Position numbers and translations under genes: made by a program. DNA of 64,000 nt from Orbicella franksi. Lineage: Eukaryota. The notes below the pieces were generated by a model that was not told the origin of the DNA, did not search any database, and saw only the letters and a program-made list of their open reading frames with translations. The stretch is from NCBI GenBank assembly GCA_964199315.1, contig OZ116699.1, forward strand, positions 13,268,001-13,332,000. The letters are read 5' to 3'. Shown here piece after piece: positions 47,301-50,300 of this stretch; positions within the stretch are counted from its first letter, which is position 1; the number at the start of each line of letters is the position of its first letter.

Positions 47301-50300
47301 GTCTCCAATGAGACAGCAATCTGCAAAAAGGTAGTTAGGTGTTTGGGTGAGTGGAGTCGATAAATCTCGTGATCGATAATCCCCCAAGGAAAGGTAGAAG
47401 CGTATTGTACCTTTGCATCCGTAGATTTCCACTCGCAGGCAGTTTGCCCTTTTCCACTTTTTAGGTCGAATCCGAATATACCGGGCAATCAGCTGGTTGG
47501 ATATTTTCCGAAATTCAGTTGTATTGGGTTTAGTGTTGCCTTTAAATTCCTGCACACAGAAAGAACATTCAAACGTATTGCATTGTTTCCCTTAGCACTT
47601 GTTACAAAGATAATCTGAAATCAGATTTCTTGTGCCCGACAGGAGCATAGTTAATAGAGGGAATGGTTAAAATGCCCGGTAAACATCAAAGAAGCAAACA
47701 AAGAGTCTAAGATTTATGTTGACAGGTCTTTGACCCTGCACATCGTTTGCTTTATGCTCATAGACTATGCCTGAATTACATAATCGCAATGCTTCCATTG
47801 GTTAGTTGTATGAGCACACATAACCGCCTTTTGTATTTTGCCGGGTTTTGAGCAGGGTAACTCCAAAATAGCCAACAAAACCACAAAACAAAGAACTTTG
47901 CCAGATTTCATAACGATTCCCTTTATGAACTACGATAAGAGTAAAAAGCATATAGATTCATTTACAATATGTAAGAAGCGACAGTAGCACTTATAGCTTA
48001 GAATTTAAATAATGAAAATGTCAAAAGCCGTACATTATTGAGTATTCCGTGACTGTATATATATGTAAAGCATACATGTGGGATTATCCCCGAAGAGTAA
48101 GAATTTTTTCTTCTTTTTTTTTCTTACTTTTTTTGAAGATACTTCACGCAATGTTTCTAAACATCGTCAATACACAAATACCTTCAGATATCCTCCTTCA
48201 TAATACTGCCTCCAAAGATCGCCATTGTCGCTGTACTCTAAAGTGAACTCTTTCACATAGGCCTTCGCGAGACGAGTCTTAGTTTCAAAACATTCCTTCA
48301 CGGTTGCTTTTACAGCAATGGTCCCAGTGTTGTTAGCAATAGTGACGCTTTGGACTTCAACTGAAGAATTTTGTCCAGAAGCGTTGTTAGCCAAGGTGAT
48401 ATTTTGTACCTCAACAGATGAATTTTGCCCCATTGTATTGTTCGCCAATAAGATTTTCTCTGAAGAGTTGCTAGCCAGGGTGACATTTTGCACCTCAACA
48501 GATGAAGTTTGCCCCCTTGTGTTGTTACCCAGTGTTATGTTTCCAGCTTGGGACGAATTTAGTGAAACAGTTTCGTTTGCCAGAGAACTGTGTATGAGCA
48601 ATTAACATAGTCACGTCATATATTTTGCATCTTCTATATCCCTGTAAAGCAAGACTGGCTATACACTGTGTGCTGCTCTACCATAGCTTTGAAATGGACG
48701 TTATGACGAATTTAAACCAAGAATCCCCTTAATAAAGAGTGATCTCCAAAAGGACATGAAAATAAAAACTAGCTAGGTGGGGAACTATTTAAAATCGGAC
48801 GCCACCTTTTCGCTCCAAAATCATATATGCACCTTTACAACAAGAATAGGCTATCTGATAACGCTTTTCTCACCAAGGCTGTTCCAGCTATTTTAGAAAT
48901 AGATTACTCCTTTTCGCAACCATTACATTTTTCGAGGGCTGAAAAGTTAGTCCTCTCAGATAATAGGATTACGAGTACGAGATCGAGTACAAGAACGACT
49001 TTTCAATTCTAGTTCGTAGGCTCCACATTATCACGTCACTGGTTTGAAATTCGAAAGTTCTATTCGTATAGTGGTCCAATCTAAAGGTCCCTAATTTCCA
49101 CATTTTTAGTATCTTCACATAATAACTTTGCAAGTGGACGAGCCCCTAGCGTACGTTCATCCTAGTTAAATTATCTTACAGAGAGATAACTTTAAACAAT
49201 TAGCCCACAAGGGCGCGTTGGATGTGAGTTGGCAATAATCATCTCATATCCAGGGCAAGTGAAATAATTTTTTTTTTTTTTTAAAAAAACGCCCCCAAAA
49301 AATTACGCGCGTGCTTACCATATTTAGAGAGCATGGTATAATGGCTCATATACCATGATGGTTAAGCCAATGAAAACACTTGAATTGTATTATCCAATCA
49401 TCCAGTTTTTAGTAAATTCAATTACGTTTGGGGTAAAGACATACCTGCAATTGACTTGTTTCTCCCAAGTAGTCACAAATTCGTGAAGCTCATTTCCTTG
49501 GATGGCTATCATGCTGATTTGGAATCGATTCCCAAGATCAATCTGCAAGAATGACTCTACATCACGTGCATCTGCACACCACGAACCATTCCCTGAAATG
49601 TCATTCAGCCGGCCGCGAAAGGGCTCGAACCCAGGCCCAAAAAATGATGATGACGTCATAGCTTTGTCAGGAATGATACCATCTTTGATGCCAAATGGAT
49701 CGAAACAAGCTATAACAAAACAAATCTCATTTGCACATTGATATCAATAACCAACGATAAGCGTCAACGCTACAAAAATGATAGGTTGATGGCTACCAGA
49801 AATAGCGTAAGAGTTAAAAGCACCAAGCAGCCAGTTCAAAGAAAAGATATTTTACAAAAGGATTAACGTGCTGCGGGGTAGTGGCTTTCCAAAATACCTT
49901 TTAAAAGCTAAACAATTAAAGCGTAAACTAAAAAAATAGTTTGTGTTTCTTTTTGATTTCAGTGTTGGTTGGCTTATGTTTCTTTTTTGTTTATTTTTGT
50001 TTATCTGTTTGTTTCTTTGTTTGCTTGTTTGCTCGCTCGGTTTTTTTTTACTCACCTTGACAGCCGTAGAGTTCAAGTCGTAAACAAGTATCACGGATAG
50101 CTCGCTTGGGATAAATTCGAAACATTTTCGCTCTTACTGGAAATGAAAGATTGTTAACCACAATCTCGCTGCTGTAATCTGAGTTGTTACGATGAAATAT
50201 CTGTCAAGAAAAGTTTATGTACATAGATCAGAACAAGTATAATCAACTTCTCATTGAACTCATTGAACTCATTGACAAGGGAGGGTTGTATCAAACTCCT

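Follow-up and report, generated by a model that had tools for sequence, protein, structure and literature searches.

A cysteine-bracketed, sequon-dense loop within the second discoidin domain of a predicted polycystin-1-like receptor of Orbicella franksi

A 64,000-nucleotide stretch of the Orbicella franksi genome (NCBI GenBank assembly GCA_964199315.1, contig OZ116699.1, forward-strand positions 13,268,001 to 13,332,000), hereafter the window, encodes on its minus strand an array of discoidin domains, the second of which contains a long, asparagine-rich insert lying between two cysteines. The locus raises the question of whether this insert belongs to the mature protein and, if so, what it does there. 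The insert lies in exon B of domain 2, and the evidence strongly supports constitutive inclusion of exon B as coding sequence in a polycystin-1-like receptor. The most probable role of the insert, to which a probability of about 0.55 is given, is that of a disordered, disulfide-closed brush, N-glycosylated and located at the binding face of domain 2, acting sterically and with its composition under selection.

Domain 2 is divided among exons A, B and C (Table 1). Exon A follows an acceptor reading ..ttatag, encodes CFDPFG...IQGNELHEFVTTWEKQVNC and closes with the first two bases of a split codon at the donor AG/gtatgt. Exon B begins after ..cacag, supplies the third base of the split codon (Ser), continues with 98 residues and then CFETKTRLAKAYVKEFTLEYSDNGDLWRQYYEGGYLK, and ends at the donor AAG/gtattt. 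Joined on the minus strand, the two exons form a single open frame, ..IQGNELHEFVTTWEKQVNC-S-(98 aa)-CFETKTRLAKAYVKEFTLEYSDNG.. Exon B is present as a single copy in the 497-Mb genome, and its skipping would break the frame because its length in nucleotides is not divisible by 3.

The window was compared with the sequencing runs X7 (a coral metatranscriptome), X3, X15 and X23 (raw polyadenylated, polyA, reads). One X7 contig, of depth 6.8, carries the A-B joint at 49445/48587; it extends over 181 nt of exon A and reaches just 27 nt past the joint. Another carries the B-C joint at 48182/47549, covering the whole of exon B and reaching 131 nt beyond the joint, and a third joins the two exons of domain 1; X7 also holds contigs that cover introns. 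The sole X3 contig over exon B is unspliced. X15 has the character of genomic DNA and differs from the window by about 0.5%. The exact A-B junction pattern is absent from the metagenome contigs of the Joint Genome Institute (JGI), and the exact B-C pattern has one match there, L011 (Ga0099806_1091608, 2015 nt), which may share a project with X7. L011 maps to window positions 46380-47554 and 48176-49014, with the B-C intron removed and the introns between A and B and between C and domain 3 retained. Since it keeps two introns but lacks the B-C intron, it is a partly processed transcript, which suggests that the B-C intron is spliced early or that the L011 library is rich in nascent RNA. The A-B junction that a sequence-only reading of the window had predicted is thus seen in X7, with direct support that is thin. 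Splice sites that leave out the insert, or an untranscribed exon B, would have refuted that reading, and the contigs show neither.

The insert holds 12 N-x-S/T sequons in 99 residues, compared with 4.3±1.6 expected from its composition, and none of 20000 composition-preserving shuffles reached 12; a thirteenth, N-C-S, spans the A-B junction. It is rich in asparagine (16%), serine (16%), threonine (11%), valine (11%) and alanine, and is devoid of proline, aspartate, histidine, cysteine and aromatic residues. The three recognisable repeat copies comprise about 70 nt of DNA each, lie 54 and 84 nt apart and are 70-86% identical. Degenerate units flank them on each side, and the array was not reported by Tandem Repeats Finder. 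Translation reproduces exactly the 99 extra residues and 12 sequons of the sequence-only reading, and its estimate of about 3.5 copies of an ~18-residue unit is roughly right, apart from one unit of 28 residues. A mucin-type (proline/threonine/serine, PTS) domain is ruled out by the absence of proline, the motif being N-x-S/T. That the repeat arose through successive duplications of the W-V strand is unsupported, local DNA alignments of core to insert, tail to core and tail to insert being no better than codon shuffles (P 0.85-0.99); a weak peptide similarity between TGTIAVKATVKE and TKTRLAKAYVKE has P 0.015, uncorrected.

Discoidin domains bind ligands via short spike loops, and the position of the insert within the fold is central to its interpretation. 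Domain 2 displays the N-terminal Cys, the C-terminal Y-G-C Cys, the Q-G motif and the [WY]-V..Y-S.d-G..W motif of the family, read directly as CFDPFG.., ..IQG.., ..YVKEFTLEYSDNGDLW.. and ..CLRVEIYGCK. The three exon pieces match positions 3-67, 50-82 and 86-127 of PF00754 (F5_F8_type_C) with E-values of 5.6e-6, 7.4e-3 and 5.1e-5; each alone falls below the 28.2-bit cut-off, and combined they span the full profile. For exon A the match to factor Va C2 has an E-value of 1.5e-11, and exon A residues 1-72 align to the discoidin domains of factor Va, factor VIII, lactadherin, DDR2 and neuropilin, every alignment stopping at Q-G. The alignment of factor VIII C2 with exon B residues 101-135 shows the insert in place of the 'VKSLLTSM' loop, an 8-residue loop that carries Leu2251/Leu2252 of the third membrane-binding spike. 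The spike-3 loop of factor VIII C2 lies on the ligand- and membrane-binding face. The loop from QG to [WY]V measures about 126 residues in domain 2, against 4-13 in the sibling domains and 8 in factor VIII C2. This long spike loop is a variant feature, and domain 2 remains a member of the PF00754 family.

The siblings compared were the 11 domains whose QG-to-[WY]V stretch lies in a single reading frame, a few degenerate domains being left out. None of the 11 has a Cys pair or an intron in this loop, and 2 have a single Cys. The sequence-only reading had located the insert between QG and the W/Y-V strand and had described its bracketing Cys pair and phase-2 intron as peculiar to domain 2; alignment to solved structures puts the insert in that place, and both peculiarities hold among the siblings read. 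The exon-A tail begins with E-[FW]-V, 5-6 residues past Q-G, at the position of the siblings' W-V strand, and Pfam positions 50-67 align twice, to this tail and to the segment after the insert. Because the tail holds the family W-V motif ahead of the insert, the arrangement is not a simple insertion into an otherwise normal loop: the loop spans about 126 residues and has two basic arms. The tail (11-16 residues, Lys/Arg-rich) and the 10-residue basic spacer after the insert would be the arms of an extended hairpin, with the insert at its end.

Domain 2 contains six cysteines. Four of these presumably form the two disulfides of DDR-type discoidin domains, one between the first Cys and Y-G-C and the other between W-C and C-L-R, which leaves the cysteines of V-N-C and K-E-C to pair; this pair would close the base of the hairpin. 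The first of the two is kept in 11/11 exon-A orthologues and the second in 20/20 aligned sequences.

Homologues of exons A and B were sought without a profile among 1.84 billion representative proteins, and additionally by a word-indexed search, yielding more than 25 orthologous frames for exon B and 11 for exon A, all of them genomic and reading into introns. Orthologous DNA loci comprise the deep L002, L004 and L005 (the last two being Tara metagenome scaffolds) and the congeners L007 and L008. In their domain-1 cores the deep loci have 68-70% identity with the window, and all 5 loci share the order domain 1, domain 2 exons A-B-C, domain 3. In each of the 5, the donor stands right after the first Cys (TGC AG/GT) and the acceptor CAG/N is in phase; the acceptors have a pyrimidine tract ahead of them, with stop codons just 3-12 codons upstream. 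The 11 exon-A frames all end in ..VNC followed by AG/GTAYGT, the middle of the tail being variable and the flanks QGNEL.E[FW] and VNC kept. The distance from the second Cys to [YF]V is exactly 10 residues in all 14 orthologues measured. The inserts themselves range from ~75 to ~145 residues at 40-50% identity to the window and carry 8-20 sequons per 100 residues, with high sequon density in every lineage examined.

The ratio of nonsynonymous to synonymous substitution (dN/dS) was calculated by the Nei-Gojobori method for the window, L007 and L008 in three gapless pairwise alignments. The loop (exon-A tail plus insert) gives 0.61, 1.45 and 0.92, compared with 0.19-0.40 for the rest of domain 2 and 0.12-0.25 for domains 1 and 3; the exon-A tail alone gives 0.3-2.6. 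Nonsynonymous and synonymous counts differ between the loop and domains 1 and 3 combined with P = 4e-5 and 1e-4 in two pairs, the third pair not being significant. The loop sequence evolves near-neutrally. Domain 2 overall evolves faster than domains 1 and 3, and exon C shows 8 nonsynonymous and 1 synonymous changes against L007 (dN/dS 2.4), a pattern not repeated against the other congener. Sequon residues change less than others among the congeners, with no pair reaching significance.

Ten sites of exon B distinguish haplotypes of X3, X7 and X15 from the window; 9 of these sites fall within eight amino-acid changes, T27N and S80N creating new sequons. Exons A and C show no differences in the contigs that carry these polymorphisms, and the density of polymorphic sites in exon B is 3-4 times that of the neighbouring DNA (P = 0.003 and 0.03). 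Insert length in congeners differs by +10, -3, -5, -18 and about -28 residues, in unit-sized steps. An in-frame deletion in contig L006 (Table 1) has a 4-nt microhomology, CTAA, and removes 18 residues including the second Cys. No indel or repeat-number difference was found in the insert among X3, X7 and X15. The expectation that the loop would be length-polymorphic is therefore borne out between congeners and is probable within the species from the L006 deletion, with no length difference in the three samples checked.

The wider gene determines where such a loop would stand. At least 15 discoidin domains run on the minus strand from 50692 down to about 11600, followed by TSP1 (E 1e-12), PKD repeats (7e-18), REJ (E 8e-25 and 5e-37) and a weak GPS (E ~2e-3) with an H-L-T motif and then a hydrophobic segment. 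The next 10 kb of the chromosome add PLAT (7e-19), Polycystin_dom (2e-27) and PKD_channel (6e-42). The gene occupies window positions 573-50700 on the minus strand and runs on into L010 (5970-9874). PKD, REJ, GPS, first transmembrane segment, PLAT, Polycystin_dom and PKD_channel occur in the order of the polycystin-1 (PKD1/REJ) family, and the gene is accordingly read as a polycystin-1-like receptor, its pieces being assigned to one gene from genomic order. The discoidin array, TSP1, PKD, REJ and GPS all lie N-terminal of the first transmembrane segment and are extracellular. No discoidin exon was found upstream of domain 1, and a candidate signal-peptide exon near 52900 is kept in a close congener only. 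These features agree with the sequence-only reading, which had called the protein a receptor and had put the insert near its tip: the architecture downstream of the array is PKD1-like, and domain 2 is second from the N-terminus.

The proposed mechanism joins these observations. Exon B would place about 100 low-complexity residues into the domain-2 loop that matches the third spike of factor VIII C2. The two conserved cysteines would pair in the secretory pathway and close the loop at its base, on its two short basic arms, and most of the 12-13 sequons of the unstructured stretch would acquire N-glycans. The outcome would be a glycan brush of tens of kDa projecting from the ligand-binding face of the domain that is second from the N-terminus, growing and shrinking through unit-sized duplications and deletions. 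Selection would keep the open frame, the two cysteines, the arm length and the sequon density while leaving sequence and unit number free; since it would act on composition rather than sequence, the brush would most probably be steric. It may shield or occupy the binding face as a shield, spacer or auto-mask, and may keep the receptor tip hydrated, protease-resistant and non-sticky. The brush probably does not serve as a sequence-specific binding site. Disorder is consistent with AlphaFold2 on exon B (20-sequence alignment), which gives residues 1-97 a predicted local distance difference test score (pLDDT) of 28-36 with no secondary structure, and the core strand 53-66.

Several observations weigh against this reading. 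The AlphaFold run covered exon B alone, with the rest of the domain absent and a shallow alignment. The A-B joint occurs in one low-depth contig with a short side of just 27 nt, L011 retains the A-B intron (though it likewise retains the undoubted intron between C and domain 3), and the raw polyA reads of X23, from a related or the same species, include none on these exons. Protein searches with exons A and B return only genomic frames reading into introns and no spliced product. Since the L006 contig is without the second Cys, the clamp may be dispensable; both the clamp and the glycosylation of the insert are deduced from sequence. Finally, a dN/dS near 1 fits plain tolerance as well as it fits a shield.

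Such tolerance is the substance of the main rival explanation, which is less likely. It holds that the insert is a passenger, a slippage-prone low-complexity expansion in a permissive loop with a function limited to solubility, whose sequons were inherited through copied units and kept since glycans render a floppy loop harmless. Near-neutral substitution, unit-sized indels, the lack of predicted structure, a deletion allele missing one Cys, and a reduced rate at sequon residues that is significant in no pair are all as this explanation would have them. It accounts less well for a loop that is in frame in every orthologue found while neighbouring domain cores differ by ~30%, for units that are replaced yet hold sequon density at 2-4 times the compositional expectation, and for two cysteines and a 10-residue arm that are strictly fixed.

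A second rival, which appears doubtful, regards the tip loop as a recognition determinant, read by lectins or tuning binding in a species- or individual-specific manner (gamete, self/non-self or symbiont) under diversifying selection. No part of the N-terminal region evolves faster than the loop, whose dN/dS rises to 1.45 and whose dense polymorphism falls almost wholly in amino-acid changes. PKD1/REJ receptors act in sea urchin egg-jelly recognition, and their N-terminal lectin domains are positively selected (PMC1934368); a homologue of suREJ is highly diverged between two Atlantic Acropora species, a report not tied to the present gene (PMC11577847). Among the three sequences compared, however, dN/dS is not significantly above 1, and the variable residues do not template glycans. 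A bolder version by analogy with sea-urchin REJ proteins, that the Cys-closed glycan loop is a species- or genotype-specific, lectin-read recognition tag of broadcast-spawning corals, is a more speculative and improbable proposal; such a tag might serve gamete compatibility, self/non-self or symbiont recognition and would evolve as units are gained or lost and sequons turn over.

Two further explanations are very improbable when set against the glycan brush. That the insert is absent from the mature protein, being removed or bypassed by another acceptor and its open frame incidental, draws on the single short-sided A-B contig, the intron retained in L011 and the lack of a spliced protein in the databases searched; it is largely refuted, as the observed joint falls exactly at the predicted GT..AG, the X7 B-C contig runs unbroken through exon B up to the acceptor, the frame opens 3-12 codons upstream of a conserved in-phase acceptor at six loci and survives many indels, exon B encodes indispensable core strands, and in-frame internal AG sites occur only at Ser codons and are unsupported. 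That the insert is a small folded module, a beta-solenoid or leucine-rich repeat (LRR), takes up the V-x-x-I-x-L-x-x-N pattern of each 18-residue unit, which on direct reading resembles the LRR core L-x-x-L-x-L-x-x-N, and a weak match to the bacterial beta-helix-like repeat protein P0011 (E 2.9e-5); the low pLDDT without strands and the lack of any Pfam family or ESM Atlas look-alike for the insert leave this reading of the pattern unsupported, and unit length (18 or 28 residues) and number are not conserved under near-neutral substitution.

Table 1. Features of discoidin domain 2 and its insert, in window coordinates.
Feature	Position	Strand	Description and basis
Exon A (265 nt)	49445..49709	-	First two thirds of domain 2 (CFDPFG...IQG) with a 16-residue tail ending in V-N-C; translation
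Exon-A tail, putative first loop arm	49447..49491	-	Residues 73-87, NELHEFVTTWEKQVN-C; orthologue comparison
First putative clamp Cys	49447-49449	-	Closes the exon-A tail, V-N-C
Phase-2 GT..AG intron inside domain 2	48588..49444	-	X7 joint 48587/49445; donor and acceptor phase kept in orthologues
Exon B (406 nt)	48182..48587	-	Insert, Y-V strand and SDNGDLW core of domain 2; translation
Insert proper	48293..48587	-	99 residues between the two Cys; translation, composition, sequon count
Repeat copies (three)	48324-48393, 48378-48447, 48462-48531 (span 48324..48531)	-	..GQNSSVEVQN[IV]TLA[NS]N..
Second putative clamp Cys	48290..48292	-	Residue 99 of exon B; invariant in 20/20 aligned sequences
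Basic spacer, putative second loop arm	48260..48289	-	10 residues, FETKTRLAKA; length fixed in orthologues
Canonical discoidin strand and turn	48182..48259	-	YVKEFTLEYSDNGDLWRQYYEGGYLK; aligns to factor VIII C2; dN/dS 0.16-0.44
Exon C	47411..47549	-	C-terminal third of domain 2 (EFKGN...CLRVEIYGCK); Pfam positions 86-127; joint 47549/48182
In-frame deletion (54 nt)	48281..48334	-	L006 (Logan SRR31168890), 98.2% identical, genomic-type; one contig in one run

Other features of the locus were observed alongside. The introns on either side of exon B hold fragments of a high-copy repeat at 47670-47983, 48926-49082 and 49240-49396; these three segments reach depths of thousands to tens of thousands in every contig run, with many loose ends, and are probably transposon fragments. 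In L008, positions 538-1875 carry an RVT_1 reverse-transcriptase frame in the intron between the domain-1 exons, which is not there in the window. Within the host gene, the first exon of the discoidin domain at 16895-17236 appears truncated or differently spliced, leaving the family pattern after ..FLQVSVSSHL, and may represent a degenerate domain or a further intra-domain intron. Long simple-repeat frames of the (SQSV/SQPA)n type occur on the minus strand at 4760-5385, within an intron of the REJ-GAIN region. The upstream neighbour at 59951-61648, also on the minus strand, has reading frames of 381 and 184 residues with several hydrophobic segments and no Pfam match, and is a separate gene for a multi-pass membrane protein.

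Comparison with known systems delimits what is new. Spike 3 of the factor V/VIII C2 domain (PF00754) has its fold and loop in common with coral domain 2, from which it differs in that the coral loop is ~126 residues long, sequon-dense, intron-split and hypervariable and has an extra Cys pair. Viral envelope loops such as V1/V2 and V4 of gp120 of human immunodeficiency virus 1 (HIV-1) constitute a steric glycan shield; like the coral loop they are Cys-bracketed and drift in sequence and length at a maintained sequon density. The analogy is one of function alone, the coral protein being a non-homologous host receptor with no known immune-escape pressure. The factor VIII B domain, one of several heavily N-glycosylated disordered linkers, likewise belongs to an extracellular protein with discoidin domains and combines poor conservation with many sequons and an apparent lack of structure, but it sits between domains, whereas the coral insert lies within one and would be Cys-closed.

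The polycystin-1/sea-urchin REJ family shares PKD, REJ, GPS, PLAT, Polycystin_dom and PKD_channel with the host gene. Described members carry C-type lectin, SUEL, WSC or LRR modules, in contrast to the at least 15 discoidin domains and TSP1 found here. Members of the family bear N-terminal glycan-binding modules, and SpREJ1 is ~50% carbohydrate (PMC4890752, PMC1934368). A coral skeletal 'REJ domain-containing protein' has the order WSC-PKD-REJ-GPS-PLAT and no discoidin domain (PMC4890752). Genes of the REJ/PKD1 family are also among the diverged or swept genes of Acropora, in reports not tied to the host gene (PMC11577847; bioRxiv 10.1101/2020.02.26.956680). The literature search found no description of a discoidin/FA58C array joined to polycystin or REJ, nor of a glycosylated insertion in a discoidin spike. 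The conversion of a discoidin spike loop into a hypervariable, sequon-dense loop thus appears to be new.

Should the loop have no effect on binding at the tip, it would be an instructive yet ordinary tolerated insertion. As a glycan brush, it would provide a natural example of selection on glycan density over sequence, within a folded domain. Sea-urchin receptors of the polycystin-1/REJ type mediate sperm-egg recognition, and if the loop modulates binding at the receptor tip, it may provide a way into receptor gating, or into species-specific recognition, in reef corals.

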